From: Fimbriosthenelais zetlandica
Taxonomy: Eukaryota
Direction of reading: 5' to 3'
DNA length: 64,000 nucleotides
Assembly (NCBI GenBank): GCA_977030845.1
Contig: OZ365112.1
Span: 16,182,001 to 16,246,000 of the forward strand
The notes under the pieces are model-generated. The model was not told where the DNA came from, searched no databases, and saw nothing but the letters and a program-made list of their open reading frames with translations. Each line of letters opens with the position of its first letter. The first letter of the stretch is position 1. Of the stretch, positions 1 to 62,177 are shown one piece after another. A program made the position numbers and the translations under genes.

Positions 1-241
1 TGCCCTGGAAGAAGTGTTAGGTCTTATCTAGCGAAAGAACATTACCATAAAGTCGGAGGGCACATTCGGTTCACAAGGTGCAGCCTACAAACAATCTTAC
101 CAGCTATATACACCCGGTCAGGGAAGGATGTAGGTCCGCAAATCAAATATATCATATAGCATTGATCGAGATAGTCCAGGAATAAGATATCAATCGAAAT
201 TAGGAAGGGTTGGACGCGCTCTCAGACATCAAACATTGTTG

Positions 242-362
242 ATTGGTGCATATAAAGAGCTGCTCATCAGTCCCCTGCTCTCAGCCTCACTTGCTTTCAG
301 TGTGAATGTTGCAGTGGAGAGTTACCTTAATGCCAAGGGAGTTTGATGGATTGTGAAGGAAG
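242..362 (+). promoter_or_regulatory. Candidate TATA promoter and short non-coding first exon upstream of PKA-RI alternative exon A
   Basis: ATTGG at 242-246, TATAAA at 251-256, Inr-like TCAG/TCACTT about 30 bp downstream (281-292), donor GAAG|GTACTG after 362, possible acceptor TATTAG at 901-902. Confidence 0.3.
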
Positions 363-911
363 GTACTGGCGGATGACTAACCATTTGTTGTAGTATTAAC
401 ACCTCACACTGTCCCTGTTAATGATATCATACATTTTCATGAGAACCTTGACCCTATAATCTCATCATTATTTCTCCCACTCTTGCCATCAATACATTAC
501 TCCTTCATTGCATAGGGATAAAAAATAGGAAGACTGAGGGATCGTTCCAGGAAATGTATCGGTTAGCCTTGTAGTCTGCTGGACATAGCTCATACTGTCC
601 AGCGCTGACCACCACTGGCCTTTCCACACAATCATATCAGTCTGACCCTAAAAAACCTCACCATTATCGATCTCAGGCCAGGCTTACTAGCGCTAGAGCA
701 CTGCTCTTTCTCATTGAGGTTTAATTATATCTGCCACCAGTTGGACCTACATCTGTGTCCCCGTGCTATATATTTATATTCAGCACAGTAATATTATCTC
801 ATATATTATATCACACATCGAGATAAAAAGCAATCATATCTGGAGATATACTAGTAATCTGTGTAATTTGCCTTTACATCTGAGTATTGGATTACCTATT
901 AGACGACCACC

Positions 912-1076
912 ATGGGAAATAAATTACCAAAGATAAGGAGGCCTGGTTCGGCTAAAGAGAATAGGGAAGAAGATAAAGAAAATAGAGAAGAGGATAAGGA
1001 TAAGGTTGAGTGTAAACCAGAGGAAGGTGGGGAGACAGAGGCTGCTGGAGGAACACCTTCTCCTGAGAAAAATGAG
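912..1076 (+). CDS. PRKAR1: Candidate alternative first coding exon A of PKA-RI (MGNKLPKIRR...EKNE, 55 aa)
   Basis: Kozak CCACCATGG and a phase-0 donor GAG|GTAGGT matching the phase-0 acceptor at 9611. An internal KENREED x2 duplication differs only at 3 synonymous third positions. Confidence 0.65.
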
Positions 1077-1274
1077 GTAGGTTTCTCTCAACAACTCGGG
1101 AGGCCCATTTCTCTCAATGTCAAACTGGTAATGGCAAGCTGCCTTCAGATGTCGACCGACTCTGAGGAGAAGTACTTTATTCCAAATCTCATACACAGGA
1201 AAATATATTGGATGTTTTCTTGTACAGATTCCCCGAATCAATACGTATAGTATATAGTATGGGTATCTATAGTC

Positions 1275-1306
1275 CATATTCCCACTTCAGCATATTCCCA
1301 CTTCAG
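1275..1306. repeat. 16-bp perfect tandem duplication
   Basis: CATATTCCCACTTCAG x2. Confidence 0.85.
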
Positions 1307-4052: not shown

Positions 4053-4153
4053 CTAAATAACATTCATCAATGTTATTTAGCAATGTTATTTTGCTTAAAT
4101 AGCATTCATCAATGTTATTTAGCCTAAATAGCATTCATCAATATTATTTAGCC
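4053..4153. repeat. Three copies of a 29-bp palindromic (hairpin) unit
   Basis: TAAATA(A/G)CATTCATCAAT(G/A)TTATTTAGC at about 4054, 4096, 4125. The first copy is a perfect 12-bp stem with a CATC loop (4053-4080). Confidence 0.8.
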
Positions 4154-7100: not shown

Positions 7101-9014
7101 TATATATAGGATATTAATTAATCAAGTGAAAAGGAGATGTACCTTAGGTGTTTTACCTATATAGTAGAGCATAGGCATAGTGAGTCAGTATCTAGCAGCA
7201 TGCACTATACTGTATTTGGTGAATGAGAATAGTGCACATAAAAATGGGTTTGAGTGTACTAATTATTATTATGGGCGGTATGGGATGCTTTGTTGTTCTC
7301 TTGGATGCTTTGTCTCTGCCCATCTGAATCAAGGAGATGGACAGCTTGAAATGTCAGTCCTCTATACATGAGCTGCCACAGCCATTAATCCCATGTTGAG
7401 GTGCCCTCTCTATGACAGACTTACATGACTCTGTCATCCGCTCGACCCACCTCCCACCTCTAACCGACAGCTAGTGAACATGTCAACGTCATGCCCTGTA
7501 GAAGCCAGCCTTCTAAGGGTCCTGCCATAACATATACATCTAAGGTTAGTGATGGCATGATTAGCATCGTTTGGCCTTGATCCTTGTTTGAACTATGAAC
7601 CAGATATAGACGATGCTAAAAATAAAACCAAGGTTGATTATAATATAGGACTGAAATTGTTCTTTCTGTCTGTCGTGGATTCCACCTATTGCTTGCTGGA
7701 CATAAACTAGATGACTACAGGCTGTTGAGAAAATTTACTTTTCTAGAGGAAAAAGTAGACGTCATCATTCAATGAACGAGATCGAAGGGAAGTCCTTGGC
7801 TGTGCACTTTCTCATACATGTAAGCCGATTAACATACCTAGTGGTCCAATATTCTCCTCCCTGGATTGCTGTGAAATCCCTGCTTTAGATGTTTAATGGA
7901 CTTTCTCTCAGAACCCAGCAGTCTGTCCCCATGAATCTCTTTCACATGGTCTTTCCTGATGTTGGACCAGTGGTCGAGGATCCATAATTTCATCTTGAGC
8001 CATCTTTAGACTTCATGAGAGCTCTTACTGGCCTGTGACCAGTGCCAGCCTTAGGCCAATAATAGCAGGTAAACGCCCCTACCTCATATATAACGGCCAA
8101 GGGGGCTGGTGTGTAATTTTGGGGTGTGAAGTGGGGTAATGGATGCAAGACATTCAGCCAGCAAGACGTGATATTGATTAAGAGATTCCACGGCGACAGC
8201 CGGGAAGACCGGCCGTGAGCCATGACTGGTGTCTGTGTGAGATATCAGGCCGAGTGCCAGATATTGAAATGCTATTAGCATGATATAATCTTGTCATTGT
8301 TATCTTTGCATTTCATTTGTGTTCATTTATTTTGTCATCACCTACATAAAAAGCTCCTGTAGTTGATTGAAGGTAGTTTAAACAAATATTATATATGGCC
8401 TCTCTTCTAATTCTTCTGATGAAAACATATGTGATATTGATTGTTTATCAATATTGTTATAATGAAACACGTTGCTTTGATGAGGGTATAGGAGATATGT
8501 AGGGAGAACTGTGTGAAGTATAAAGAGGTCTTCAGAAAGGAGACCTACCAGTCTAGTCGAATTTAAAAGGACTTGAGAATGACTGAGAAACATGCAGATC
8601 TTTATTCCTCTTAGTACATTATACAACCCAAGCATTAATGCGTGTGTCTGGTAATGTGGTGGCCGTCAGCTTTATCAATGTTTACAAACGTCCTTGTCAA
8701 TCTCGGCACCATTAGGTATAATATATATGAATTACCCATGCGAAACCAAGCCCGTATATTGTGGTTGTTAACAGCAGTGAAATACACTGTATGAATACAG
8801 ATATATCGGGATTCTAATCACTTTGAGACATCGCAAATGTGTCGGATGTATTGATATGATTTGTATTTTCTCTAATATGGGAGACTGTTGCTTCGAATGT
8901 GTGGAAATATAGAAGAATGAACACTGTAGTTTCTAGAAGGAATCCACATAAAACTATAGAAACTGGTACTTGTACTCTATAGGCACGAGAGAGTAAAACT
9001 TTACAGATAGAATC

Positions 9015-9059
9015 ATGGGACATAGTTTCAGTAATTTGTGTTCACCTGCTTCGTTCAAG
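9015..9059 (+). CDS. PRKAR1: Candidate alternative first coding exon B of PKA-RI (MGHSFSNLCSPASFK, 15 aa)
   Basis: ATCATGG start, MGxxxS myristoylation consensus, and phase-0 donor AAG|GTAAAA 551 bp upstream of the phase-0 acceptor at 9611. Confidence 0.6.
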
Positions 9060-9610
9060 GTAAAAGTTTAACATTTTGATATTTTTAATATACTCATTGC
9101 TTTGAATATGCGTGTAAGTGTTTTTATTAAAATCTCCAGAAACACGAGAATACATAATATATATATCTGTTTCGTCTGCTTCTCATTCAGTGCGCCTCTA
9201 GTTCACTTTGTGCTTGAAATGTTTGTTTTAGACAAAAAATGTGTTCAACTGGGTTCAAGAGAAGTGCTCTCCTTTACCAAACGTTCGTACAACATTGGCA
9301 CACGGCTATAGGTTTAACGGTGGTAAAAGATCTGTAAATACAGGAGGATGAGTTCAAGTGCTTCAAGTCCAGTTCAGTTCACACGGGCCTGTCTATATAG
9401 TCTTATCACCCACACTGCTAAAATATTGTTTTTCCACGGATAGCTTTATAGATTCCCGAACTTTTATTGGTCAAATATACCCATGCAACTAACGACACTT
9501 GAAGGGATCCGCTTTAAACTCTATGCTTTATGATCTCTGCGATGCAGAAGTACGAGATATGCGTGTATAAATTGTTGAGATTAAATTTGTTTCCACTTTG
9601 AACATTTCAG

Positions 9611-9778
9611 GAAGAAGCTGCCAAAGAGAAGGCTAAATCTTCCACACCGCCCAGCGATGAGCGGGACGACGAGGTCTCTCCCATCCCTCCCCAGTCTGCA
9701 CCCAAGAAGCGCAACCGTCGAGGCGCTGTCAGTGCAGAGGTCTATACTGAGGAGGATGCTGCCTCCTACGTGAAAAAG
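9611..9778 (+). CDS. PRKAR1: PKA-RI exon: linker and inhibitory site
   Basis: TTTCAG|[56 protein letters not shown]|GTCAGT. Confidence 0.95.
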
Positions 9779-15700: not shown

Positions 15701-18700
15701 GTTTCGCACGGCTGAGCCAATTGAGGATTCTTTCAGGAGGTAATGAAGAAAAGCCACCGTGAAGAGGCATGAATAATCTCCTCGTTTTGGGTTAATCATA
15801 TGAATTGCCGCCTTAATTCCCTGTAATTATGACAGTTGATGAGATCATTTCTTCCAGACCATGGCATTTTGTGAATCATCTCCTCATATATTTTTAATAT
15901 TTTCATTTCTATTTTAGTTCTCCCTTTTGGGAGTGTGTCTGCTGGGAGGGTGACACAACTGTCAGTAAATGTTGAACATTCAGGGTTGTCCTGTCCAGCT
16001 TCTGACTAGACAATTGACCACGCCTGAGCTACTACATTACATGATGCTAGATACTGGTGAATATTGCCATGGCTGTATACGCGTGCAACGCCCCTGGAAG
16101 CCCACGCTGTTAATTCCCTTGTGGACCCTTCTCATGTAATTACTCACAGGTCTGAAAGCCTTTCCTCCACCTGGCCTTTTTATGCCTACATGGAGCTGCT
16201 CTTGCTAAAAGCAGTAAAAATATTAAAAGCGAGACCCAGTGGTCGGAGCAGCTGGCTGCACAGCTGCATGGTCCGACTCCAACCGAGTAGTAAAAGAGTA
16301 GACCAGACGCAGCAGAAAACTTATTATTATGGTTGAATGTGACGTGCATTCACAGAAAAGTTTGCACAGTTCCAAGAGACTGTCTAGATATTGTATGTGT
16401 ATACTTTCTTTTCCGACCTCCCGACATGTGGTTCTCTTTAACTAAATGTGCACTAGACAGCCTTCTAGGATGGATTCTTCCGCTCCAGCATAATGATATA
16501 TAGACAGGATGATATACAGAGCTTGCCTCGCATTGAATGAATCTGGAGATTGCTATAGAAACCTCCGGCATATGGCATGCTTTACCTTTTCTCCCATCAC
16601 AATGCACGTGGCTTCAGCTCTTGGCATCCTTCATTGAAAAGGCAAACCAGACCTGCTGGCTCCTCTGAGCTCCAGTAACCTTATCACCCTGGTGGTGGAG
16701 AACATGACATCCACCATTCACTACCTTTACAAATACTCCAGGCTCTGAGCTGAATGTAATTCTCTTACATTTCCGCATTATTCATGTGCAGCACACATGT
16801 GTATAAAAGAGGAACAGAGTTAAAATCTTTGAAACCTTCTTTTACTTCTTCGTTTCAGGGTCTCGTGCCTATTCATAGAAAATGTCTTCAAGGAAATTTT
16901 CCCTGGATCTCTGTTTTGTAGGACTGAAGAAAGGTTATCTTGTGTTTTACTATCTGTGCCATATCAAATCCCGTGTTTGCATAAAGGCATTCAAATGGTT
17001 AAATTATTGCCATGTCAGGGATAAACTATGTCCTTAATGAGGCACTTTATATGCTTCCTGATTCCCAAATAACATTTTAACTTGCGGGCAAATGAATATC
17101 TGATTACCTTAGGTGAAATGGCCGTTTCAGAATTATTTATCATAATTTTTTTGTTGATTCATAAAATCCCGAGTGAAATGAATTGACAATTAACCTGTAG
17201 ATATTCGTCTCACCAGCTCTGTTCCCAGGATCTCCAAGAGGAATATTTTGTAGATATTCCCGGATTGTATGTGGTGCTTGCACTTTCTGGTTATTGATGT
17301 CCTGGCTGTCTTTGCGATGATATGAAAGACAAGCCTACTCAAAGCCACCCTACTTATTACCTGATTTCAATTGCATGTTACAAGTGAGCCATATATCATT
17401 GAGAAGCCCTTATTACGGGCACATCTGGCACGAACGTGAAGGAAATACTCTACATGTGTTCATGTCTCTTTCGTGACTTGCTATTGACAGGAGCCATCCA
17501 CTCCAGGCTGGCAATTGCCAAGTATGCCCTGCATGTAAAAACTACTATATCCTCTCCTAAATCATAGAAAAACTTGTAAAAATATACTGTCAGAATTGCT
17601 GAATGCACAAAATTATTCAGATATTGGTGCTGCAATATTTTGACTTCGCCTAAGACATGGCATTGATCTGAGAGAGCAGAGCCATGCCACTCACAATTAG
17701 AGGTGGTACGCCAGTATCTAATACCGTATATATTAGAATTAATAATGCCTAAGTTCAATCGTTTCATTGTTTAAATGTCTATTTTGTGTTAAACTTTCCA
17801 TAAATTAAGCTAGAGGAAAGAGTGTACAAAATATTCTACCATTGATATTTTTATCTTTTCAGGTTGTCCCCAAAGACTACAAAACCATGGCTGCTCTCTC
17901 CAAAGCTATATCAAGAAATGTTCTCTTCTCACATTTGGATGATAATGAACGAAGGTAAGTGCATGGACATGCTTTAGGTTTTCTTCTCGGGGAGTTCGGC
18001 CCTTGGGACTATATTAATTTCCTGAGGCATCACTTTTGATCATTTTCTCCCTCCATCTCACGGACCCCTTAGCAGGTCATAAAGACAACATTGTTGTTCC
18101 CCCTGAAACAAGTAACTGTCAGTAGATGTGCACTAATTGAACGTATAGAACATGACATTTGTGTATGTATGCGGTGCTTCGAAGTGTGCTGCTGTACCGG
18201 CAGCATGCACATTCACTGTACACCCCCACTGTGTCATTGGTGTCATACAAGTAGCTAATGCCATCCCCAAATCTAAGCACTTACAGCTATATTCTCCGCA
18301 AAGTGCCCCATGTGATATTTATAACTATATTACACCCACTAATGCATCCAGGAAACCATTTCTGGATCTCCAATAGGCACTTTAGTCAGTAAATTATTCA
18401 TTTAGAAGAGAAAAGAGTACACATGAAACCTGAGAGCAGTGCTCACGTGGGAGAAGACACTTTATGAGTGAAGAGCTCTTGATTAGAAGCATACTCAAAT
18501 ACTCTTGTGTTAAATTCGTGGGGTAGGGGGTATTGGGAATCTTCTCCTATGAATGAGTATTTTTAAAGGGCCTGAATCAATGGCAATCGTAGACCTGTGG
18601 AGAATAGGCTTATTATGCCCAATTGATCTTAGAAGGGGGGAAATGGCGCGTATAGTGGAGCAGATTGTTGGTATGATGGGTCTGTGAGGTAAAACGGGCT

Positions 18701-21700
18701 CTGGCCATAACCGATTTTACTGCCTTCCTTCCACAGGATTCGCCACTACATTTAACAAAAAGCCTTTATATGTTAGTCCACTTGGCAATGGCACTGAATA
18801 GAAATTGCCAGTTCTCCCAGCAAATGGTGCTTGAGCAGGGACATGCAGAGACCTTTTTATATATAGATAGCTGGCCTCCTATACCCTGCTGCATAAATAT
18901 GGAAGAGTCTCAGTGTCATATCTATTTCTCGGATTGGATATTTTCAGAAATAGTTTCATATATATATAATATAGTCGATGTCGTATGTTTATTCATTATG
19001 GTCTGCCAAATTGGAAACACGTTTGAGGTATTGTTCCACATTTCTATATGTACGCATTGTCTAGGCAATGTTGGTTTCTTGACAACAATGGGCCTCTATT
19101 TGCTTGTCAATTAAGCAAAGATACCAGAAGCTGATTGGCAATCAAGTCCATGGCTAATACAATACCACCTGCAAGTGTTAATACATTGCATCAGCTTTTT
19201 ATGAGCCATCGCTATTGATTTCAGCCTAGTCATTTTCTCAGCAGATAAGAAGGGACCATTTTCTACACCTGTGTTCCCAAGAACAGAATTAATGTTTCTG
19301 TTTGTCTGACACGTTTGTTCCCCACCCATGTTAATTAAACCTTGGGGAAATCTTCATGTCAAAATGAATAAATTTAGCATCGCTGTCTCATACCTCTAGC
19401 AGAATGCCCGGTAATAAAAGAAGTTTTGTCTGTATTCTCCACAAGCTGATTTTCTGGTCACATACAGGGAAGTCGTGCTTTGATGTGTGTAATCTGACTC
19501 ATCCCTTGAGGCCGATTAATGGAGCCTTTTTTGTAAGCAGATGATTGTACTAAATGACAGAAAAATGGGGAACAACCTTGGGCTGTACTCCCGTATAATC
19601 AAAGGCAAATGGTCATTTCTCCTGTTAGAAGCTTGTCATCAGATAAAGGCCCCTTCTTTTAGAAGTCAGTTATTTGTGTCATGAATGTCCAGGGAAAATG
19701 TGATTACCTTCTATATCTGAATGCCTTATTAACAGACATGAGTCCTGAAAGAGCTCTATCTCTTCCTAGTTCTCCTCAGATGTTTTAGTAACCAAAATTG
19801 TCTTTTACCGAGTATTTCTCTTGACAAAAAGGCTTGTGTCATATCATTCTAACGCGTCGTAATTGCAAATAACTTGGAAAGAAATAATCAGATCATTCGG
19901 ATAGAAATTGGCGGTGCTTCTTAGTACGATCATTGTGCTCAAAACCATGAGAGATCACGAAGATGCAGACACTACGTACCTGTAAATGGTTCAATTTAGG
20001 GGTAGGACCGGGCTAAGTCGTAGTTAGCCTCCCCACCACACACAGGTCTGGCTATATAGAGGTTTTGCCCTACATTCCCTTTATTGGTGAAGTGCATGCA
20101 GCAGTAAGCACTGGGAGCCACAATTAGGATAATTTTTTCATGACATGCATGACAAGCTTAGACCAACCCTTAAACAAACATCAGATATGAATGTATTGTG
20201 AAAAAACATTTAAATGTCGTAATCATAAAGGTATAATATGAAGCATTTCATATTTTCATTGATCGTCATGCACGGTTGCCATCACGGTTGTCATTAGGTG
20301 CTGAATGTTTTATATTAGAGCAGAGAGAATACACCTGGTCTCTGATTAGAGTGACTGGAACTTGTTGCAGTAAAGCTACTTAGCTTTGTTTGTGATACAT
20401 GGGTATGGCATGTACATGAAACAATCATTTACAGTATCGATTCTGCCCACAAAGAAGCCAGGCATGTACTGATAATCTCCAGATCCCCTCACAGCTCTCC
20501 GCATCAGGGAGGAGTATTGACATGTAAACAAAGAGCTGCTTCCTCCTACCGTTGGCTCTAAATATATTATAACCAGCGCTATACAACAAGTCCTTAAATG
20601 GCAGCTTATTAACTCTTATAATGCCTATTCATAGATCAGTGTTGGATCATATAGGTGGAGTTTGTGAAGTGGGTCTGCTGGCTATGGTAGGAATATTGCT
20701 CACGTAGTGTTTTTTTTTCTTTCTATGAGATCTCCATAAACCAAGAGAGCGATCCATTGTAAATGCAATAACGTGCCCTTCAATTTCATAAGCTGAAACA
20801 TTGATTCCTCTGAATGCAAATAAATAAGTTGCATTGATTTGATCCTGGTTTTCCCTCGTATATACAGAGAGATATTTTAGATACCATCCCGCATTTAGAT
20901 GAGCTCTGCTGCTCTCTGAAGGTTCCCATAACTGAAGTATTGATTTTCTTACCAGAATACATGCAAAGGCCATTTAAAAAACAGTTAGTATGGATACATG
21001 TACAGTAGAGATGCATGCTGATAAGCATGCTCAGTGATATTGGATGGGTTGAAGGTTTTTTATTTAGTATTTAACACTCAAGCTGTATCTTCATAGCTTC
21101 ATTGTATTCGTCACAGCCTGTAACATAGACTATATTATAGCTCCAGGGCTACCAGTGATGGGAATTAATCATCTGAAAATGTTATAGCTGACTCTGCATT
21201 ATTTCTTGGCTTGTAAGTTCAAAAGCCTTGTATAGTTGATGTCACATATTTCGGCTGTATAATGATTTCACCCTTTCTTGCCATCAACGAGTCATCCATT
21301 TAAGGTTGCTATACATTTCCCATTTGTACATAATTTCCTTCAAATACCATGCATAATCAGCTCATATTCGATATGTGGAACATGACCATTTGGGATGCTT
21401 GACCAGCAAAATTGTCCATGCCTTCCAACATTGAGCTCCGTATTCCAGAAATTAAGCTTGGACTGGGTCTAATGATACATCATAAGATTCCAACAGATTT
21501 TTTGCATCGCAATACATTTCAGAAAATGATTTGTCATAGAAAAAGCTGTGTACCAATTAGGGGTCTTCAGGGGAAGTGTTCTTAAGAGACTTGTAGGTAG
21601 TTCTAATAGCTCTACCATAGTGCTGGCCTGATTTATTGTGACTAGTAAAAAGCTTTATAGTCGAGTAATTCAGCTTGTCTACTTTCCTGCCATTTAAAAT

Positions 21701-24700
21701 GCTTCATGCCCACAAGACCTCAGCTGGAGGTATAGAAATACCCTTCCAATATGCACAGACCGATTCTAATGTGATTGCTTCCTGTTTTACTTGAGCTTCA
21801 TCGGGTCACCCCCTTATCCCATTACCATTGCCTTGGGCAGTGGTAACCTCAAACATACCCAGATCCTCTCCCACTCTTTCATCTAATACTGACATGGAGA
21901 CGGCCTTCCCCTGACAAAGTGGTCTGATACATGAAGGAGAAGACTGTCTGCTTCATCCTTGCCTGGTCAGTGATTGCTGTGCAGCCAGGGGTCATAAACT
22001 TCAGCTGGTCCTGCCTGCAAAGCCATTCTCCTTCCAGACGACCAGTGTGACCTGCAGACCAAAGGTTCTCCCTATTTATAGATGCTTTCTAAACACTTTA
22101 CACCGACATTGTGTTTCTTTTTACAATGTCAACCTCGGAAGATCAGTTCAAAAACTGGTATGATTTCAAACTAGGCCTACGAATTGTAAACTGAGTATGA
22201 CTTTTTGTCCTGAATATTTGGAGGTTCACTATACATGTACCAAAACTCTGGCAGTCAGCAACGTTTTGCTCTTTAAGAGTCAAAATCTATCCTTCTGAAA
22301 GACATTTTTCCCTGCATTAAATGCTGTATAAATGAAGAGATCGTATGGCAATAGTCTGAACGAGAAGAAAGGTACTTCTGCGTTCGTGGATGGAAAATAC
22401 CTGATGCTAAAAGAGAAAGATTCCGTGATGAATGACGTAGACGTATTGAATTCCGAAAGTCTATGTCTGTGACCTGTAAACGGTTTCTTTGCCCTCGATT
22501 GTTCTCAGTAAAGACGAAGACCGTCTCGTCTGTCTTCATCTGCCGTAGACCAGTTTCCTTTCAGAAAGCTTTTCAAACTCCCAACATCAGATTCAGGGAA
22601 CTACAGTTGCCACCTAAATTGGCTCATCATCACATTCAGGGGAAAGAGCCTCAGTAGAAAGCCTACTGGTTAAATCGCGAATCTGTATCCTTTTCCGGAT
22701 ATTACAGGTTTTTATTGCAACATGTTTGGCAACATGTTTGGCAACATAAGAGACAAGGTCAAATCTAGCAGCATACTGTCTGGCCCAAACTCTCTTATCA
22801 ATTTTAATCGTCCTCTGCATGCAGTTCGCTGTACATTTCAAATTCACTATTGGAGACTAAGGTCATTGTAGGTATAGCTGCATCAATAGTCACTACAGCA
22901 CTTCAGTATAGGCCAGTCACAGGCCCTCCAGTCAGCCTTGTCATTTATTTGAAGATGTAAATGGGACTGTGTTGACTTGGTGTGCTTCTCTGACAAGGCA
23001 AACAGCTAGGTCGTGACGGCTGGCAAATGCTTGACAGTCTGAGATACATGACAAAGCTGTGCTCCCCCTGCCAAACCCTCCAACCTCCCACAACCTGGCT
23101 ACAGTCATCCACTCCCCACTCCCCACTCTCCACTCTCCTCTCATCCAGGAAACGTGCCTCCTAAACCGGCGGTGAAATACCGATGTTCCTAGAGAAGAAA
23201 GGGATAAGTGGAATTCCCTATGAACTAATCTTAGAACAGTGACGAATCCTGTATGAAAAATCTGCCTTCAAACAGAAAAGGCAGCTAAAGCAGAGATTGT
23301 TCCTTGATAAGCCCCAGTCACACTGTCACGAATTTTACCACGAATCATCACGGATCAGCCTTCCTTGGCCATCCCTGATTAAACGTGGTCAACCGTAGGT
23401 GACATCCCTCATCATCCCTGGTCATCCCTGGTCATCCCTAGTCATCCCTGGTGGTTCGCCAAAGTCTACGATCTTCTACGAAAGTTTTGAAATGTTCAAA
23501 ACTTCCGTAGCCACTCCACGATTCATTGACGGATGAATCAAACCTTAGTGGAAACTTAGCTCTTCCCTTCTAAACCCTAGACCCTCCCTGCTAAACCGTG
23601 AAACATTCGTGGTTATCCCTGGCCTTCCCTGAAGGTACCTACGGCCTGGTTGGACCGTCAGAGTTCGTGAGAGTGCCGTGAGAAGTCTTAGGGCTACCGT
23701 GATGATACTTGGTTATAACCACGGACAACCGTATACATATCGTACATGATCCCTCATTTTCCCTGACAATTCCTTCATGAAAACGTACTAAAACGCTGCA
23801 GAACTTGATGAAAACGTAGCAGATTAACCAAGCCCTCCTTGATTGATCCGTATTACAATTCGTGAGTGTGTGACTAGGGAGCCAATATACCACGGTTCAT
23901 CCGTGGTTCATCCTTGGATTATAAACCGTGGCAATCCGTAGCTTCATTCGGGACAGTGTGACTGGGGCTATAAGCTTTTTCTGGTATGGAAGGTTGGGTT
24001 TTTCATATGTTCCAATATGAAAGGCACAGTTCATAAATACTAAAACTATTGTAGAGGAAGAGCCATGTGGACCTGTATGACAGTGCCTCGGGGCATCCCA
24101 TTTGTATTTACCCAGGCCAAAGCAGGAGGAGTTCTGCTGTCGTTGACTGAACCGAGGCAGAGTCAGACATAAGCCTCGCCTGATGCTTCTAAAGCCTCCA
24201 TATTTGTGTTTGACCATTAGATCCATATCAATCATCCTGCCTTTGCTTGACTTGTGTTTCCGCCTCCGCCCATCTGCCAGCTCTTTTCTTGATTCATCTT
24301 GTTTGGTGTCGAGTATAAATCTCACTAGTCAAATATTTATAACCTTTGTATATTGGGGCATGATGACGTGATATGGAAAATAGCATTTGGCGTCAGGATT
24401 CTAATTTGTATTCATATTAGAGACATTTCCATCACACGTTGGTCATTTTATGAGAGAGTTTTGAGAGGGCAGGAATTGATATCGGAATATTCTGTCATGT
24501 TACAGAAAATGTGACCTTGTTGTATGGCCACTTACTATTCCCCTGATTAAAATGACTTAAATAACATGTTTTAATTGTCTGATTGTTCTCTTCTTACAGT
24601 GACATCTTTGACGCCATGTTCCCTGTCCATCGACATGGTGGTGAAACAATTATCCAACAAGGTAAGAGATCTAACCTAATTACCGCGTATTACCTATCAC

Positions 24701-27700
24701 TGGTCACCTCCACACTATTAAACACTAACTTAGCATATATTGGCCTAACCAACCCTTTTAGCTTCTCATTAATTTTTAACCAAGTTCTTTCAATTCTACC
24801 ACTTTAACTCATGGCCTATTCTGTAGAGACCTGTCAAAACAGTTTCGCTAATTGGAGCCTGTCTGCTGTTATCATTATCGGAAATCTTGTGATCTTCACA
24901 AAATCTCGTTTGCACGAAAGAGTGGGTAGCAGCCGGATGCGGTAGGCAGCTTGCCGTGATGGGAGACGGTCAGCTGCCTGGCGGGCCCGGATGTCGCAGG
25001 CATAAAGGTCCACGACACATATAGCATCATCTCATTACATTCAGTCTTCACCAACATTTTCACGTTTTCCCGAGCAGTCTGATGCCCTTTAATTCCAGTT
25101 TTTTCCATAAAGTTACTATAAAGTTAGAAAATGCCATTTGGCACCGTTTCATTTATGGCCAGGAAATAGTATAGATGTTTTATCTGACATCTGAAAGCCT
25201 TCATGCTGGTGGTCTGTTTTTTTATCTTCTGACATACGCCCATGTCCATCGTGTAGGCAAATAATTAATTTCCGATGATGGGTGGCTTCAGGTTTCCTTC
25301 AAGGTACTGCTGGCCAAATCAGCTCCATCCAAACAGTTTGCACAATGTGCAACAGTTGCTTGGTAGGAAGACCCTCTGCTATGCTTCAAGCCCAGGGCTC
25401 TGATACCACCATAATCCATAAGGCTGCCTCACTCTAACCACCCGCCCCATGTCAAGGCTGCCTTACTCTAACCACCCGCCCCATGTCAAGGCTGCCTTAC
25501 TCTAACCACCCGCCCCATGCCAAGGCTGCCTTACTCTAACCACCCGCCCCATGTCAAGGCTGCCTCACTCTAACCACCCGCCCCATGTCAAGGCTGCCTC
25601 ACTCTAACCACCCGCCCCATGTCAAGGCTGCCTCACTCTAACCACCCCGCCCCATGTCAAGGCTGCCTCACTCTAACCACCCGCCCCATGTCAAGGCTGC
25701 CTCACTCTTACCACCCGCCCCATGTCAAGGCTGCCTCCCCCTATCTGGGATCTCTGATAGTTCAGGTCATGGCCCTTTCTCCTCAACAAACCCCTTTATG
25801 TAACACTGACTCAATTTAGATACAAGGCTGATGGATGATCCCTCATTAATCCCTCTTTTGTTGTCATGTACGATGGAAAGATACTCCATCATACATGGCG
25901 CTCTTTATTCACTTCATTTCACACCGTCAACAGCTTTGTTGGTCTACCCCTTTCATCTTCATATTAAACCCTGGTATGATCCTATACCCTGCCATTATAA
26001 ACACGCATGTTTGCAGTGTCTCAAAAATAGTCCATACTACTTTTAGTCCCTTGAGCTTTCCAGATGAATAAATTTCAGAAAAGACTATGTCCATGTCAGA
26101 TTTCATTTTGTGGTGAATATATCATTTTGTAACACACAGTTCAAATATATTTTTTATGTTTCAGGTGACGAGGGAGACAATTTCTATGTAATCGACCAAG
26201 GAGATGTTGATGTAAGTATGAATAACCTTCTGGGTTCCTATCCAGTCGATGCGCCATAACAGACCCACAGGGGATGGAGTGTCATGCCTTTCAACCTTCC
26301 TTTGTCAAAAGAATATTTTGCCTTCGGCTTCCCCTACCAGTTTTCCAGCCTCCTGCTTCTATCTTCTCTCCCCTCAGTCTGAGGTGTATGTAGCATCCTG
26401 CACACAGCTGCTGGTAATATTGAGAAGGAATATTTGTGCCAAATTTTGCCTTAGAATAGCACGATCGCATGGACTGGCCAATGGTATGAGAACAGATTTG
26501 GTTTTAATGAACTTCAGTGTAGCAAGGGCTGAGGTCTGAAAGCATAGCACCAGGGTCAGTGAGTGAATGTGGGGAGCAATTCTGGGACTGACTCATTATT
26601 CAGGTCACACTCTGCTCCCTACCTGATAAATCTCTATTTGCGTGATTATTGGAGGTGCCAGGTGCCACTATGCTCCACCAATCCATCCATAGTGTACACC
26701 GTACGTGTTGTGGACAAGTGGTCACTTGGGGGAGACCCATTACTAGGTGCATCTAAATATCCCCTGAAAATTATTTGCTCATTTCGTGGATCCATATTGC
26801 CTTGCATCGACGGTAAAAAACAAACTTAAGAAAGTCTATACTGGTGTGAGTCAGAATGCTGGGTGATATAATGTAGCTCTGCTCTGCCTTGACTGGGCTG
26901 GCTCTGTTGGTGGTTTTGATATTCAGTAGAGGCTTTATTGTCTGACCTTCCAAATCAAATGGCACCAACCCTTTAATAACCAGCCTGCTTTTTAAGAGTC
27001 TGAATATCAAAATATTTTTGTCGTAATAGCAAGTTGGCTTTGTATGTCATTGATTGGGTACTTTAACTGTGAGCTGCTCTATGCGACATGGAGCAGCTCC
27101 TTTCTACTTACCCTGATTGGAGGCAGTCAATATGGGAAGTAGTTATGGCCTGGCTTCCGTCACTGATTGCCTCTGATGGTGGCCTAGATTGCTCTATTCC
27201 TAGAGATATCGACCCCTTCTAAACCATGCTGCCTTCATTCAGGTGATAGGCCTACCATGCACAATGAAAATTCTCCTCTTCTACCTCACCCAATCCAAAC
27301 TTCACAAATGGAAAATGACCTAATTTATTATTTTAGGAGACGGAGACGTACCTCTTTGAATATAACTAATATGATTGTCGTCAGTATTCACATGGAAGTA
27401 GATATATATTCTTGCAGAATTGTTTTTCTAAATTATTTTGTTTTTCTTTCAGGTCTATGTTAACAATGAATTGGTCGTTGTCATCGGAGATGGCGGTAGT
27501 TTTGGAGAGCTAGCTCTTATCTATGGAACACCTCGAGCTGCCACAGTGAAGGTAGGTTTACCATTAGAACCAAATCATTTTATTTTTCGGTTCATTATGA
27601 CATTATGATTCCTTTGTATAAATCAAAAACCCGATGGGAAAGGTGGTTAATTTTTCTTACATCCTATTTCATGTGTCATCAACTGGAAATAATACTTTTG

Positions 27701-30700
27701 AAGGACAGTCTAAGAAAATTCCATCAGGCTCTAAATACTGATTCCAAAGAAATGAAGCCAGCTGTGCCAGCATGGATGAAAATGAAAACTTTGATTAAAA
27801 GATTGAAAAGATTGATTATTAGCTGCCGGCGAGTGGGAATGGAGAGGGGAGGATAAAAGGGAGAGAATAATGACAGGCTGTGGTTTGATTCTACCATTAG
27901 ATTGTGTTATCAGCTGCAGCATTTCCTCTTCAAATATTGTCCCCTGAAATCAGTCAGTCACATGATTAATCTATAGTCCCAAATTCCTTCCATCCGATTC
28001 CAGAAACACGATTGAAACAATTTCACGATCTTTGAACAACAATTGCTGTTGTGTTGAACACAATTTTCCTATTTCATCTATACATGTACTAGAATTAAGG
28101 TCCCCCTTAAATTCAAAGGTGTTTTTGCAATGTTAGTTGTCTACTTTAAAGGTATTGACTTTCTTTCTTCACCTCATAAGATGTGTTTTATATGACAATA
28201 TCCATGGCGGGGTATCTTGTGTGATTCTCCAAGCCCACCTGTTATAAACGATCACCTTTCTTCACCGTCCATGTCTGTCACTAATGTTCATGGACTTGAA
28301 GTAGTCTCTGGTAGGAATTTTTTGTTATCGATGTATTTGAACTCATACAGAGCAGGGCCGGAGCACTTTTTTGGAAGATGAGTGAAGAGTTAAGGGTGGC
28401 CATTAGGAGGGAGACTTCTCACAGGTCGTGGGTATAAATAAACATGAGATGGCTTCATCTCCAGCCTCATTAATTCTGCCTGGTCTCCGGACCAGGTTAC
28501 TGTGAAGAAGACCTCAAAGTTTAGCGCTTGTCAAGATGTACATGTGACTTACAGCCCGGCTCTTTTTACCGGCTTTGATTAGAGGCTACCAGACAGCTTC
28601 CGTTCACCTGCCACTTTTACCTATTGACATTTTCGATGGTCCGGTGGATGACCGCAGGCTGACACTGAGGCAGGAGGAGGTGGAAAGTAATAGTTTGTCC
28701 TTGGAGACATCTATGGCTGCTTCAAGCATCATCATCAAGGTTTTGAGGATGATGGATGATCCAAAGACAGACATGATCAGCAGTTTTATTGAAAAATCCC
28801 TATTGTGCATGATCCAATATCCTGGTGAAAACACTGAGCAGAAAAATACAAGCATGTATTGTTATTCTGGTCAGCAGTCTTGTCTACAAGGACCCGTACT
28901 GATAGAGGATGATAGAGCATGCCAGTCATACTAATAACATGGTATCAGAGATACACATGTCCTGATAGATATTAATGTACATCCGCAGTAATCATGGTTC
29001 ACATGGATTGAGCACCATCTTGATTCACTGATACTAGATGTCACAGGCTCATATGATACCTGCTCATGAGAAACCTTTTATAAATTCGCTGTCTTGTTCA
29101 ATATTTTCCTTTCTACCGAATTAATAATTCATCAATGAAATTCTGATCCCTGATCAGCTCGCCCTCCTTTATCAGTTGCCGGAGATTGATTGCCATGGCT
29201 GCCTGGATGAGGCATGATCGATTGAGAATTAGTGAACGGGAAAGCTCTTTAATTAGTTCAAAATGTTTCGATTTTCCCCAGAGATGCAAAGAAGAGTACA
29301 AAATCTAAAATTAAAGATAATTGTGGGAGCTTTATATGTGGAAAGATTGTGTAATGTATCTTAAGCGATCCTTGTGTCTTTCGCAATCAGATCTCTCGAA
29401 TGACTTTGTAAATTTATGTCATTTCTTTTTATAGTAAAATTTGAAATGTTTCTCTTGTCATATATAAAATATCGTTTCTGCACATGTGAACAATGGCATC
29501 TGCCGGTTGAAAGAAGATAGCATATTTCGATAAAATATCTATATAGACGCATATATCATTTTATCTTTTGTTGTCAGACATTTGCCCCCATGCCTATATA
29601 AACTTGCGTGAACCAGACCGCCTCTATATATGGCTTCCAGCTTCAATCCACGCAATCACAAAACTTTCGGTCCGTGTTTGCTTAGTTCCCCCATGGCTCT
29701 GGATAGAAATATGACACCCCAAGTACTAGGGGGTTAAAGCAAAAATTTCTCAGAGGCCGCAAAATAGAGGGTTAAAACGCCACCATATCTCTGTCAATGC
29801 AAGCTTCTCGCTTCAAAAGTTATAAACCAAATTACACGTATACGTACATATTGAGCATGCTTTTTCCTCCTAGCTCTGTCAATATATTTTCGAATGAAGA
29901 TATCTGAGAGAAGGAAGAATTCAGATGAAGATTATTCCGGTTTCAGTAATATTGTAATGTACTCAGCTGTGTTACTGAAGTAAATGGATATTAGTGAGTT
30001 CGTGTTGAATATTGTCATCGTTTGCATCGAATGCCTGTTGGCTCACGGTTATTGTAGATCATCCAATGACAAAAGAATAAATTAGGTTGCCTCTCTGCAT
30101 TAACTCATCAACTTCCACGAGTCCCCTTACTCCGTCCAAGTCATCCTTCACGCACTCCCCTTTCTGCTAACACTTATTGATAATTCCTCTCTCATATATT
30201 CCTCTCATAACCAGCGCGCTACTGTTAATGGGAGTCTATGATGATGGCTTGATCCCGTGTCACATGCCTGAAGTAGCCATCACTGCTCATGTTTTAGGTC
30301 GTCATGAATACACTATGATGCCTACATATACAGGAATGAAGAACCATGACCAGTAGATATAGGCTTTGACAGATTCCTGAATATAAGCGAATTTTATTAT
30401 GACAGGCATTTCATGCGTGTCAGACAATTCAACCCCCCTAGACATATAATATACATAGACCAAAAATATTCATTAAACTTCCAGTTACATTATTAAGAAA
30501 TACGAGGATGGGACAGGGTTGAAAGGTGAATCTCTTTCTGCAGTGTAGTTGCCCGCCAACTTGCTGTAGTCTTGAAGCACTTCCTCAGGGCTAGCCCTGG
30601 ATGGTTTTGTCTGCTATATTATGACTGCTCCTGGGAAATCTACAATTATTGTAGCCTGGACAGGAGATGGGTACTGGAATCACTGGAGAGACTGTAATGA

Positions 30701-33700
30701 ATGGACCCAATATTGAATTATTGCATTGCTTTCATATTTTCTCAGGCAGATGTTCTCATATTCCTTCTCCCCAGTGTGCACTATCCACTGCCTTATTAGT
30801 TATTTATGTAAGCCACTACTCGGATATGAGATATCCATAAGGAATTACACCATTTTATACAGCAATTTCCAGTGTTGATTAGTAGGGAATGATTTAATGA
30901 ATTTTCCCCTTATTAGTATGTAATGAAACGCTGGTGGTCTCTTTATTCCAATCAACCACCTCCATTATTTGATTTACATGTCGATAGTTCATTCATTTCA
31001 TGAATTACTTTTTTCTTTCAGGCAAAAACAGATGTCAAACTCTGGGGAATCGACCGAGACAGCTACAGACGTATCCTGATGGTAAGCCTCATTAGCCCTT
31101 TACCTTAATTCAATCCTTCAGCATGGCAGCCATGGTCATTGCATTTGGAAACAATAATCGGGCGGAAAATCTATTTTCAGAGCAGCTAAGCTTCTGTTAA
31201 TTCGGAAAGCAGGGGAATAAGAGCAGAATTACGAATCCGAACCAGTTTTCAACACCGTAGAATAAATGATGTCATTGGGTGTAACGTGATCATTGATATA
31301 ATATTTTTCTAGCCGACCTCCCATTCGGTTGGAATTTGAGTAGGAACTATGTGAAAGTACATGCATAACCTGAATATTATGGCCTTAAATAAGTGCGTGA
31401 AAAGCAATACAGGAAATCTGCCGGAAACAGGTGATTTTGCCGTGAAATGGCATCATGATTAGGGTGGACGGGAAATTATCTGTCAGGCTCCCACATTCAT
31501 GTGACAGCTCGGATATGGAAATGAAATTTTACTTCCGGAAATGGCACACAACACCCGGCTGCCTGTAAAGAACCTTGAGCAAATGAAAATGCAATGGAAC
31601 TGATATTAATATAATTCCACTCTTGTTACACACATTCTCATTCTGGGAGGAGGTATGATCTTGAGTATGAATTGTCATCGAGCTCTGTGATAGAAGAGGT
31701 GGAGATCTACCATGGTTAGCTGCATATTAGCTCATACATGATGTTCTAAATTACCCCCGGAGTAACAAATAAAGAATTGGTATGGAAGTGATCAGATTCT
31801 CACCTGTTTCTGACAGGCTGATTATGCCAGGACTTTGCGCAATATTAAGGCAGAAACCAGCTCTAGGCTATGTCACTTCCGTTTGCAGCCTACTCTCTCA
31901 GACTGGGCCTGGCTAATTGAATTAGCCTGGTGAGGACGACTAACATGCCCTCTTGGTTGCCATGGGGACCCTGCCCGTCAAGGTGTTGTGTATGTGATGT
32001 GGGGACTGGAGGGTAGAGGTACCATATAGATTACCGGTAGAGTGTAATGTATTTACCTATATTTTTGCTGCCCTTATTTTTAATCAGTCATCTGGTATTC
32101 CATCTATACATCACTGATACATAATTACCATACCAAAAAAATGTGTTAACCGTACCTTCTTTTTCCTACTTAATGTGTATTTTGTTTCTATTAGCATAAA
32201 TAAACTCTTACACTTCAGTAACGTCATTTTAAAATAGATGTCGCAGGAATCATCCAGACTTGTTTTAAATAACCAACCTCTATAAACAAGCTCTTCAACT
32301 CACATTTGATCACAGCGGCTTTCCTTAATTAGCCCAACTCCACCTTCAGTTATTAGCCACCAATTACTTTGGAAATTAGTCAAATTCCACTGAGACTGTG
32401 GATGAGCAGCATCCAGATGCCCTCGTACTTCATATTGCCAGGAGATGCCACTCTGAATATAGCCCCTAATGTTACGGCTGCATCTTATGAATATTTCATT
32501 GTCTTCTTATGTTAAATTAGGCTTATTGTCAAACCTTGTGAGGTACTGCCCCCGAAGTCAGTGCGATGTGGTAGGAACTATATATGTATAAATAGATTTA
32601 TTTATGTCATGAAATATTTTCTACCTACTTCCTTTTCCGCTGTCTTAGGTTTCCCATATAAAGTATATGTATCTGGATATCACTTGTTGAGATTCTGTAA
32701 CATATGAAGTTTATTTTGCTGTCTTCGCACCAGCTCGTCTTTTAAATTTTATTTATGCTGATTTTCTATGGTTTTCCATATTTTTCCAGGGAAGTACGAT
32801 ACGTAAGAGGAAAATGTATGAAGAGTTCCTTTCCAAGGTTTCCATATTAGGTGAGTGTTCAGTGTTCAGTCTTGTATGTACAGGCTGTATTTTTCTGTCA
32901 TTAATTCGTAGAAACTATGGAGATGCGATTTCGTCTTAAGGTTTCGATGGTAGGCAGCTTTCTAAAGTTAAGAAGGTTGGTGTTTGAAGATCAGGCAGCC
33001 CAAAGCTTTTTGATGAATAATAGATTTGAGAACAGGACACAGAGGACTGCGTGGCAGCTTAGCGTGGTACTCAGGCTTGATCTACTCTTAATATTTCAAC
33101 AAAATGTCAACACAGAAGCCTCAATTGTTGACTAAGATAGTATAAGCTTTACACAGAAATGACTGGGGACGCATAATGCATGGAACCTTATAAAATGCAA
33201 TTTCCCTATTTCATTGCCTGTAGTTTATAAATAATGTTTTATCATAAGGGAAGGACATTGAAGCTACTTTTGATTGTGCCATGGATGCAAGCCATTATCT
33301 GATAGGCTCGTTCAGGTCACATGGTTGATTGAGGTCAGCGCTCGCATCTGATAGGTCAGGAGCGATCACGTGATTAGTTTGAGAGAATGGGATCTAAACT
33401 AACTCTGTACCGACATTTTTCGAGCCAAATTTGACTTTATAACGTCACAAAAAATGCATGAACATTATTTAGCAGCAATACGGTATTTGATCAGATCAAG
33501 GTCATATATATAAATTAGTTAGCGTTGCTGATGTCTGAACCATATCTCATTCGATGGTTCCTTAAGCCTGAAGACAGATTAGACCTAAGACAGACATACC
33601 CATTGAGATAAAGCAGGGATGAGAGGGGGAGCTCAGGGCCTGTCTGTGAGGGGAGTAGCTCAGTGCCTGCCTGAGTATAGGCTATTTTGAGACCAAAGCT

Positions 33701-35056
33701 TTTTGCATCAAACCAGCTGTGAATAATTCATGTCGACAAGAGATAAGAGTTCCAACACAGCTCTGACCTAAATCGATTCCAATAACGTTAATTGTTAGTA
33801 TTACCTATTTCGGTTCCTTGTTTTCCCTGTTGCATGTAGAGCCCTCATAGATGTTATCGAAATCTTAGAGTATATATTTGGTATTTGTTATTATCTATGA
33901 GACTTCTAACTTTAAATATTGATGTATATTTTCTTCTATATTACAGAAAGCTTAGAAAAGTGGGAAAGACTGACAATATCAGACTCGCTAGAGCCAGTAC
34001 AGTTCGAAGACGGACAAGAAATAGTCCGACAGGGAGAACATGGCGAGGACTTCTTCATCATTGCGGAGGTGTGTCTCAGTGTTGTGTGTATTCATATATT
34101 TTTATAACATAAGTTTCAGTTGCGTTTATGCAGAAGAGACAAGATGTAGAGAGGTGCCTTGTGTCCTCTTTAAGTACCCCATCTTCTGCGTGCCCTTTAG
34201 TGGAGGTCATTGAAAGTACAGGAACTTTTTTGACCCAGCCTGACTGCATACACTGTTAGTCAGGATTAGTCTGACTTGTGACCTCTACAAAGATGGATGC
34301 ATGTCTTTTGACCTGAGAACATCTAGTCTCCAAAATCTTTCAAAATCCTTTCATGACCCTGCACCTTCTTGTCAAATACAAGAAACAGTCATGACCTACC
34401 AAGATATTGACCCCCAAGATACCTTCAGAAGTGAAGTTGAAAGGATCTTGGAAGTCGTCTGAACAGACAATGAATATTGGGAATGTTTCTGTATGTTTTC
34501 TTTATATATATTTGTTGCTGCTTTCGTAACTTATAAGGGAATAGTTTATGAAAGGATTTTCATCAAAGTGCTGAATCCCTAATGTCACAGTTCTTGTAGA
34601 TGAAACCATGATTGATTGCACTTGATTTTTTTCATCCAGGGAACTGCCAGCGTCCTCCAGCGGCGATCAGAAAATGAGGAACCAGTAGAAGTGGGCAAGC
34701 TGGGATCTTCCGATTACTTTGGTGAGCTCTTATTGAGATAGAATCGTCTTATCTTTATTCTGTGAATAGTAGACTTGCTATGGCCTTTTAGTATTAAGTT
34801 GCATAGTATACTTAACACAACTGTACTGGAGGTGGTTTTATATAGACTGTCAATGATTGTCATTGGTGTGTACTATTTTACAGGTGAGATTGCCCTGCTG
34901 CTCGACCGGCCCAGAGCGGCTACGGTTGTTGCCCGCGGCCCATTAAAATGTGTGAAGTTGGACAGAGGAAGGTTTGAGAGGCTGCTAGGACCATGTAGTG
35001 AAATACTAAAACGAAACATCGCACAATACAACAGCTTCGTCTCTTTATCTGTCTAA
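9611..35056 (+). CDS. PRKAR1: cAMP-dependent protein kinase type I regulatory subunit, core coding exons (spliced; N-terminal exon alternative or outside window)
   Basis: Exons 9611-9778, 17863-17954, 24600-24661, 26165-26211, 27453-27551, 31022-31081, 32790-32850, 33947-34068, 34640-34721, 34884-35056 join in frame (966 nt incl. stop) with GT-AG introns. They encode the type I pseudosubstrate [41 protein letters not shown] and C-terminus YNSFVSLSV. Confidence 0.96.
12687..12782. mobile_element. Short inverted-repeat remnant (possible mini-MITE)
   Basis: ACGTGGAAAATAGACC ... GGTTCTATTTTCCACGT (one indel), about 63-bp spacer. Confidence 0.35.
17863..17954 (+). CDS. PRKAR1: PKA-RI exon
   Basis: [38 protein letters not shown] boundaries, 92 nt. 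Confidence 0.95.
23109..23140. repeat. Degenerate (CCCCACT)n simple repeat
   Basis: ccactccccactccccactctccactctcctc. Confidence 0.5.
23310..23969. mobile_element. Non-autonomous DNA transposon (MITE), PIF/Harbinger-like, 660 bp
   Basis: 24-bp TIRs with 1 mismatch (AGCCCCAGTCACACTGTCACGAAT / ATTCGGGACAGTGTGACTGGGGCT), 3-bp flanking duplication ATA (23307-23309, 23970-23972), internal TCATCCCTGG repeats and GTTTTGAAATGTTCAAAAC palindrome, CpG-rich relative to the host intron. Superfamily is inferred from TIR style and 3-bp TSD. Confidence 0.85.
24600..24661 (+). CDS. PRKAR1: PKA-RI exon (CNB-A)
   Basis: (S)[20 protein letters not shown](G), 62 nt. Confidence 0.95.
25420..25737. repeat. 34-bp minisatellite, about 9.3 copies
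   Basis: Unit CAAGGCTGCC(T/C-variant TCAC/TTAC)TCTAACCACCCGCCCCATGT repeated head-to-tail at 34-bp period with few variants. Confidence 0.95.
26165..26211 (+). CDS. PRKAR1: PKA-RI exon (CNB-A)
   Basis: (G)[15 protein letters not shown], 47 nt. Confidence 0.95.
27453..27551 (+). CDS. PRKAR1: PKA-RI exon (PBC-A)
   Basis: [33 protein letters not shown], 99 nt. Confidence 0.95.
31022..31081 (+). CDS. PRKAR1: PKA-RI exon
   Basis: [20 protein letters not shown], 60 nt. Confidence 0.95.
32790..32850 (+). CDS. PRKAR1: PKA-RI exon
   Basis: [20 protein letters not shown](E), 61 nt. Confidence 0.95.
33947..34068 (+). CDS. PRKAR1: PKA-RI exon (CNB-B)
   Basis: (E)[40 protein letters not shown], 122 nt. 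Confidence 0.95.
34640..34721 (+). CDS. PRKAR1: PKA-RI exon (CNB-B)
   Basis: [27 protein letters not shown](G), 82 nt. Confidence 0.95.
34884..35056 (+). CDS. PRKAR1: PKA-RI last coding exon (PBC-B)
   Basis: (G)[56 protein letters not shown]. Confidence 0.96.
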
Positions 35057-37149: not shown

Positions 37150-37544
37150 GATTTAGCATTGAGCGTTAGTTCCTGCTTTTGCCGGGGGTGGAGTAGTAGC
37201 ATGGGGCAGAAATAGCGCCCAGGCCGGTACCTTCCCAATATGTAAACAAGCCCGCTTTCATAGGGATTTACTCTAGTAATCCTCATGACATTGATATTAC
37301 AGTTATAGGAGCTGAAAGCCCAGGAATTTTACTTTCCAATGCACTTTGTGTCATATTTATGGCGCCGGGGGAAATTATGAGAATACTAAATTTAAATTGA
37401 TGCGTTAAGCGTGCAGCCGGCCATCCCATCGGCTCAAGCAAGGCGCAATGGGGCTCGAGCCACTTGAAATTTTCAGAAGGCGTTTGTAGCACTATAAAAG
37501 AACGAAAATGACTCAAATTTAAAACTAACGCTCAATGCTAAATC
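37150..37544. mobile_element. MITE-like element with perfect 22-bp terminal inverted repeats, between the convergent 3' ends
   Basis: GATTTAGCATTGAGCGTTAGTT (37150-37171) and its exact reverse complement AACTAACGCTCAATGCTAAATC (37523-37544). No TSD resolved. Confidence 0.7.
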
Positions 37545-62171: not shown

Positions 62172-62177
62172 AATAAA
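62172..62177 (+). terminator. Possible polyadenylation signal of a long G-alpha12/13 3' UTR
   Basis: AATAAA about 4.6 kb after the stop, in U-rich UTR-like sequence. Motif only, no transcript evidence. Confidence 0.25.

Follow-up and report, generated by a model that had tools for sequence, protein, structure and literature searches.

In the 64,000-nucleotide stretch of DNA analysed here (the window), a micro-exon of 15 codons at positions 9015-9059 on the forward strand is, to judge from the recurrence of its motif in relatives, probably a genuine alternative first exon of a type-I PKA regulatory subunit (PKA-RI) gene. We also lean towards the whole reading that goes with it, i.e. a genuine alternative first coding exon with its own promoter that swaps the D/D domain for a predicted lipid anchor. 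The ORF, its phase, the splice signals, the recurrence of the motif and the swapping of first exons at the same boundary in relatives can be read directly in the sequences. According to the proposed mechanism, a single PKA-RI-type gene of a spiralian would drive the micro-exon from a separate promoter situated some 0.6 kb 5' of the common exon 2. Splicing to exon 2 would skip the upstream D/D exon, and the product would keep the inhibitor site and both cAMP domains and would neither dimerise nor dock to AKAPs via the D/D domain.

The PKA-RI gene and its candidate micro-exon

The rebuilt PKA-RI gene shows AG/GT borders on all exons. Its common exon 2 (9611..9778, forward strand) begins behind the acceptor tttcag|GAAGAAGCT at 9611, encodes the linker and the inhibitor site and matches residues about 70-116 of RI-alpha and RI-beta in the PDB. 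Nine further coding exons with the two cAMP-binding domains span 17863..35056 on the same strand, with the stop codon at 35054-35056; in the gene model they lie at 17863-17954, 24600-24661, 26165-26211, 27453-27551, 31022-31081, 32790-32850, 33947-34068, 34640-34721 and 34884-35056. Joined to exon 2 and these nine exons, 9015-9059 gives an open frame of 336 aa, which corresponds to a type-I PKA regulatory subunit lacking the D/D domain. The pseudosubstrate inhibitor site (RRxA/G) is present as RRGAV in exon 2, and two tandem cyclic-nucleotide-binding domains follow; over 322 aa, the core shares 86% identity with the RefSeq PKA-R of the nemerteans Tubulanus and Lineus. The spliced model thus agrees exactly with the preliminary description as regards the retention of RRGAV and of both cyclic-nucleotide domains. 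Single window exons match PF00027 with scores below the gathering score, as they are fragments of the domain; the relative L010 reaches 130 bits. The gene itself is a member of the PKA-RI family, and the micro-exon isoform lacks the D/D (RIIa) domain by construction. No D/D-domain exon was found within positions 1-9000 of the window, so that this exon must sit upstream of the window, as it does in Lineus and Tubulanus. Proteins returned by RI-directed protein database searches include none of this species; in the RI tree the window gene falls among nemerteans, the annelid Owenia and a chiton, with branching that lacks resolution. Among the PDB matches are solved structures of D/D-deleted RI-alpha constructs beginning inside the equivalent of exon 2, several of which we take to be 1:1 complexes with the C subunit.

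Re-reading the sequence confirmed the start exon as it had been described, with 15 codons (MGHSFSNLCSPASFK) and a phase-0 donor (AAG|GTAAAA) that fits exon 2 at 9611. The start codon (9015-9017) stands in a good context, with A at -3 and G at +4. The splice donor GTAAAA (9060..9065, forward strand) is the weakest of the gene, scoring 2.06 bits on a generic metazoan matrix compared with 3.5-8.0 bits for the nine downstream donors. It is also the sole usable one, since the ORF from the ATG at 9015, if left unspliced, meets a stop 3 codons past the donor. Directly before the start codon, 98 nt (8917..9014, forward strand) are free of ATG and may represent a short 5'UTR or promoter-proximal region, though the length of this stretch is non-significant when taken alone.

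Two other origins of the element were ruled out. The region around 9015 is unique within the window, which excludes a repeat or transposon origin. As an internal cassette exon, the element would have to use the sole upstream AG (9005-9006), which has no pyrimidine tract and would create a frame-breaking exon of 53 nt.

Recurrence of the motif in relatives and chance expectation

The DNA of relatives was reached through exon 2, since its read-through translation as a genomic ORF is represented in the protein collections of numerous invertebrate genomes. Among relatives with accessible DNA, the closest is represented by three Logan runs (ERR14368245, ERR14368248 and ERR14368249; L006, L007 and L008), in which exon 2 is 98% identical to that of the window in protein and 80% identical in DNA; the second-closest relative (P0001, a contig of ENA ERZ26052378) stands at 88%. 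The introns of the window and of L006 show no general alignment, and neutral sequence is therefore saturated between the two. The sole intronic stretches that can be aligned with L006 lie in intron 2 of the window, at 10528-10708 and 11601-11661 (70% over 185 nt and 77% over 61 nt, respectively), and these may be conserved intronic elements.

On the same strand of L006, 1.29 kb upstream of exon 2, we found a micro-ORF of 14 codons starting from ATG GGA CAG (MGQCNSCRGLKCTQ), with a phase-0 donor CAG|gtaaat of 4.36 bits. It is the best of only four candidates in 4.35 kb (at least 8 codons and a donor of at least 0 bits). A second clade is represented by the loci L009 and L045, obtained from the ENA assemblies ERZ25070786 and ERZ21788760, and their exon 2 is 81-85% identical to that of the window. 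Both carry MGTSASCI(E/Q) at a distance of 1.0-1.2 kb 5' of exon 2. Codon 9 is followed by a phase-0 donor (3.4 and 4.4 bits), and the frame also runs on across a 15-nt in-frame indel to a common donor AAA|gtaggt after codon 51 or 56. Comparing the two, dN/dS amounts to 0.19/0.63 = 0.30 and falls to 0.16 over the first 32 codons, indicating purifying selection, and five ENA-derived sequences form a cluster that has this ORF as its product. Given the low dN/dS, the kept frame and this five-member cluster, the exon of L009/L045 is coding.

For the window, the preliminary description had looked to related species for the peptide and for the pattern MGxxxS...|GT, and only the second of these expectations was borne out. 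Searching the relatives' loci with the 15-aa peptide (tblastn) and with the surrounding region (blastn) gave no alignable homologue. The pattern, by comparison, is kept in both related clades with enough upstream DNA (L006 and L009/L045), where motif, strand, phase and position recur although the sequence itself is unalignable. All that the peptides of the window, L006 and L009 share is the Met-Gly start, Ser6, a Cys nearby, their small size and the phase-0 end; the shared residues are exactly the determinants of a putative acylation signal. Orthology consequently rests on pattern and position, as the peptide is unalignable beyond the motif and the distance to exon 2 differs (0.55 kb in the window and 1.0-1.3 kb in the relatives). 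The micro-exon would thus belong to a lineage-restricted set defined by the Met-Gly start, Ser6, a nearby Cys and a phase-0 donor, with the other residues varying between window, L006 and L009. Since the relatives share the Gly2-Ser6-Cys motif at the same place, the window exon is probably real. A weakly alignable block upstream of it (8792..8914, forward strand; 100-220 bp 5' of the ATG) has a counterpart at the same offset from the L006 micro-exon (gapped local alignment, Smith-Waterman z = 4.2; 2 of 300 shuffles were equally good), but as blastn fails to recover it we count it as tentative.

How often such an element would arise by chance bears on a rival explanation that we consider unlikely, namely that 9015-9059 is a chance ORF in a large first intron which is never spliced, the ORFs of the relatives being either unrelated or real there and lost here. 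In the 9.6 kb upstream of exon 2 we counted six ATG-to-phase-0-donor ORFs at the threshold of the 9059 donor, about five being expected, and 25% of trials with simulated 9.6-kb sequences of the same composition contain such an ORF starting with MG. The weak donor, the missing DNA-level alignment with the relatives and the fact that the candidate was chosen post hoc from 64 kb also fit a chance origin. The stricter motif argues against it: in simulated 9.6-kb sequence, MGxxx[ST] with an in-frame donor at least as strong as that of the window has P = 0.044, and requiring in addition a Cys within residues 3-10 gives P = 0.012. Taken alone, the window ORF is only marginally beyond chance. In what follows, the window supplies the hypothesis, and the L006 and L009 clades serve as its tests. 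The corresponding simulated values are 0.015 for L006 (0.0033 with Cys) and 0.024 for L009 (0.0067 with Cys), so that the joint chance over these two independent relatives is about 4e-4 to 2e-5. The empirical background of the motif points in the same direction. With a cut-off of at least 1.5 bits for the in-frame donor, 724 kb of sequence contain, on both strands, just five distinct MGxxx[ST]+Cys micro-ORFs (about 0.003-0.007 per kb), three of which are those of the window, L006 and L009. The remaining loci, which are for the most part more distant and include Lineus and Tubulanus, contribute 149 kb of sequence 5' of exon 2, in which no such micro-ORF occurs except the L045 copy of the L009 exon. 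One of the only two control matches in the 724 kb lies in the window itself, on the reverse strand at 62172 (MGGKCSFGDFIPLLQ, with an in-frame GT).

Predicted acylation and known modes of PKA anchoring

The proposed lipid anchor depends on the first residues of the peptide. Gly follows Met at position 2 (ATG GGA), and a small uncharged residue at Gly+4 is combined with the absence of Pro at Gly+5 (Ser6 and Asn7); Ser6 is also found in L006 and in L009/L045. To this extent the assignment of Gly2 and Ser6 to the NMT consensus in the preliminary description holds, as both residues fit and recur in the relatives. It is less satisfactory at residue 3, which is His in the window, Gln in L006 and Thr in L009, as His is disfavoured by the classic pattern: the PROSITE NMT pattern (PS00008-type) counts H among the residues excluded after Gly. 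The NMT rule bars charged residues, Pro and large hydrophobic residues right after Gly (PMC2829124), and both Gln and Thr pass it. A similar picture emerges for Cys9, which had been taken as a nearby palmitoylation site. It is present and is the only Cys of the window peptide, but it lies farther from Gly2 than Cys4 and Cys7 of the relatives (L006 has Cys4, Cys7 and Cys12, L009/L045 have Cys7) and also farther than is typical of dual-acylation motifs. A distal Cys is palmitoylated in some myristoylated proteins, e.g. Cys15 and Cys26 of eNOS. Owing to His3, and to Gln or Thr and the closer Cys in the relatives, the lipid step is less certain in the window species than in its relatives. On this basis we infer that Met1 would be removed, Gly2 myristoylated and Cys9 palmitoylated, and that a monomeric 1:1 R:C holoenzyme would be tethered directly to membranes and release C on cAMP.

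The same differences could be explained if an acylated exon of the ancestor were in decay in the window, with the ORF still open and transcription or splicing no longer efficient here. Indeed, the window combines a weaker donor with a single distal Cys and His3, as against 4.36 bits, Cys4/Cys7/Cys12 and Gln3 in L006. With introns saturated, however, a neutral relic would hardly retain ATG, Gly2 and Ser6 together with both the open frame and a GT in frame, and we regard this explanation as very improbable.

Compartmentation of PKA in animals is explained almost entirely by AKAPs that bind the D/D domain of dimeric R. By the same lipid chemistry as that considered here, smAKAP and AKAP18-alpha place PKA at membranes. 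These two act in trans via the D/D domain, and in myristoylated C-alpha1 it is the catalytic subunit that is modified, whereas the micro-exon isoform is predicted to carry its anchor on R itself, in place of the D/D domain. Such an arrangement is found in Toxoplasma gondii, whose PKAr1 has no docking domain, carries G2, C5 and C7 and targets GFP to the periphery with its first 15 residues, the targeting being abolished by G2A or Cys-to-Ala mutation (PMC6152992); the apicomplexan precedent invoked earlier for acylation of PKA-R is thus correct for this protein. Like the micro-exon isoform, Toxoplasma PKAr1 (and Plasmodium PKAr) has Gly2, and as proposed for that isoform it is R, not an AKAP, that acts as the anchor, which would make PKAr1 the closest functional analogue. 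The two differ in that the anchor of Toxoplasma PKAr1 is a constitutive protist N-terminus, whereas the one predicted here would belong to an animal RI gene in which promoter use selects among several N-termini, the canonical one with the D/D domain included. R isoforms devoid of the D/D domain are already known, as is, in Apicomplexa, an acylated PKA-R. In a full-text literature search covering part of the journals, no account of an acylated R isoform from an animal turned up. If the predicted anchor is real, it would constitute a second genetically encoded way to put PKA at membranes, as a monomeric R:C pair chosen by promoter use, and would parallel the apicomplexan solution.

Alternative first exons of the gene in invertebrates

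With the metatranscriptome cDNA of a relative (L010) as full-length query, cluster listings provided many RefSeq isoforms of the gene. The models of Lineus longissimus (locus L043) comprise six first exons with one exon-2 boundary: X1 with the D/D domain (5001-5165), X3 with MGNVQHRK... (12775), X2 with MGNKLRK... (14863), X6 with MEPEKNVSK (18048), X4 with MPRFCSC... (19797) and X5 with 16 codons, MLKFFNRLRGRNFIEE (MLKFFNRLRGR...; 36959-37006, donor 1.6 bits). The X5 exon lies 368 bp upstream of exon 2 (37374) and is a positional analogue of the window micro-exon; Tubulanus has five isoforms, one of them with a 15-codon exon (MLNRLKKRFLGLGVK). For this gene, a micro first exon in promoter-proximal position is therefore nothing unusual, and what is special about the window micro-exon is the encoded peptide, not its existence. 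The boundary at which the Lineus and Tubulanus isoforms swap their first exons reads ...LEK|(D/E)EAA and is also where exon 2 of the window starts. From this shared boundary it follows that the D/D domain would be bypassed, as had been proposed. Donors of the annotated Lineus alternative first exons range from -0.5 to 8.0 bits, so the weak donor of the window is no argument against its use. Lineus and Tubulanus have no annotated isoform of the Gly2/Ser6/Cys micro-exon type, and neither the window nor L006 contains an ML...-type micro-exon like those of Lineus X5 and Tubulanus X4.

In Caenorhabditis elegans, kin-2 likewise gives rise to D/D-less R isoforms through alternative first exons (PMC9692727). 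There, as in RefSeq models of Lineus, Tubulanus, Pecten, Mya, Liolophura, Ptychodera and Amphiura, an alternative first exon joins the shared linker exon, so that the D/D domain is lost and the inhibitor site and cAMP domains are retained. The exon geometry given in the preliminary description is right, but that description missed that first-exon D/D-less R isoforms as such are already known or annotated in many invertebrates. Unlike the micro-exon, the known D/D-less N-termini (MLKFFNRL..., MLNRLKKRF... and MEPEKNVSK) carry no Gly2/Cys acylation motif. This raises the possibility, in our view a rather improbable one, that 9015-9059 is a real first exon without a lipid anchor, yielding a soluble monomeric D/D-less RI that serves, like other isoforms with a short N-terminus, as a local cAMP buffer or C-subunit sink and in which MGxxxS is tolerated, not used. 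Such a product would be in line with the annotated short isoforms that have no acylation motif (Lineus X5 and X6, Tubulanus X4, Pecten X3 and Mya X4), with the kin-2 isoforms, which were described without lipid anchors (PMC9692727), and with His3, which is disfavoured by the classic NMT pattern (PMC2829124). Against it stands that Gly2, Ser6 and Cys, exactly the determinants of acylation, are the sole features which the peptide of the window has in common with those of L006 and L009/L045.

The earlier reading of the gene overlooked a much more widely conserved Gly2 exon at 912..1076 (forward strand). This second alternative first exon, MGNKLPK..., has 55 codons, a strong Kozak context (CCACCATGG) and a phase-0 donor (GAG|GTAGGT). 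Homologous N-termini, with MGNKL[RQ]K, are those of Lineus X2, Tubulanus X1, Littorina X1, Liolophura X1, Mizuhopecten X1/X2 and Lingula X1-4. The homology confirms 912-1076 as a predicted member of a conserved, RefSeq-annotated type of alternative first exon that extends from nemerteans to a gastropod, a chiton, a scallop and a brachiopod. Like the micro-exon, the MGNKL[RQP]K isoform starts with Gly2 in a first exon of the same gene and replaces the D/D domain. Unlike the micro-exon, it is long (50-190 aa), basic and then acidic, and has neither a Cys near the start nor a small residue 6; position 6 is P, R or Q and thus off the classic NMT pattern. Moreover, the MGNKL isoform has an ancient origin and has been annotated widely; the MGxxxS-Cys micro-exon, by comparison, is unannotated and seen only in near relatives of the window. 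Automatic pipelines have already annotated the MGNKL isoform in several spiralian phyla, yet it is uncharacterised, and our full-text literature search, which covered part of the journals, found no description of this N-terminus.

Combining both Gly2 exons leads to a broader reading that we put forward only tentatively and hold to be somewhat doubtful: lipid self-anchoring of PKA-R might be an overlooked animal mode and no peculiarity of Apicomplexa, in which promoter choice selects between D/D, MGNKL and Gly2/Ser6/Cys isoforms, convergent with Toxoplasma PKAr1. The MGNKL exon would then be the ancient form, and the micro-exon a fast-evolving one giving a monomeric, dually acylated, AKAP-independent membrane holoenzyme.

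Several further observations concern the first exons of this gene. Lineus X5, Tubulanus X4 (MLNRLKKRFLG..., L044 46581-46625) and Ptychodera X3 (MNFLRSLFRRRK..., P0318) have a basic-hydrophobic character in common, and their N-termini might form an amphipathic targeting peptide. The first intron of the Tubulanus PKA-R gene contains, at 19113-38190 on the reverse strand of L044, transposon-type genes (GTF2I/Chromo; CxC1, CxC2 and KDZ domains). In Lineus, 3.1 kb upstream of exon 2, there is an unannotated micro-ORF, MGRPTCLRCM (L043 34266-34295), with a phase-0 donor of 3.44 bits, which may either correspond to the Gly2/Cys micro-exon or be due to chance. Finally, an 18-codon ORF in the window (7491-7544, forward strand; MPCRSQPSKGPAITYTSK) has a phase-0 donor of 3.86 bits, starts like Lineus X4 (MPRFCSC...) and could represent either a further alternative first exon or a chance ORF.
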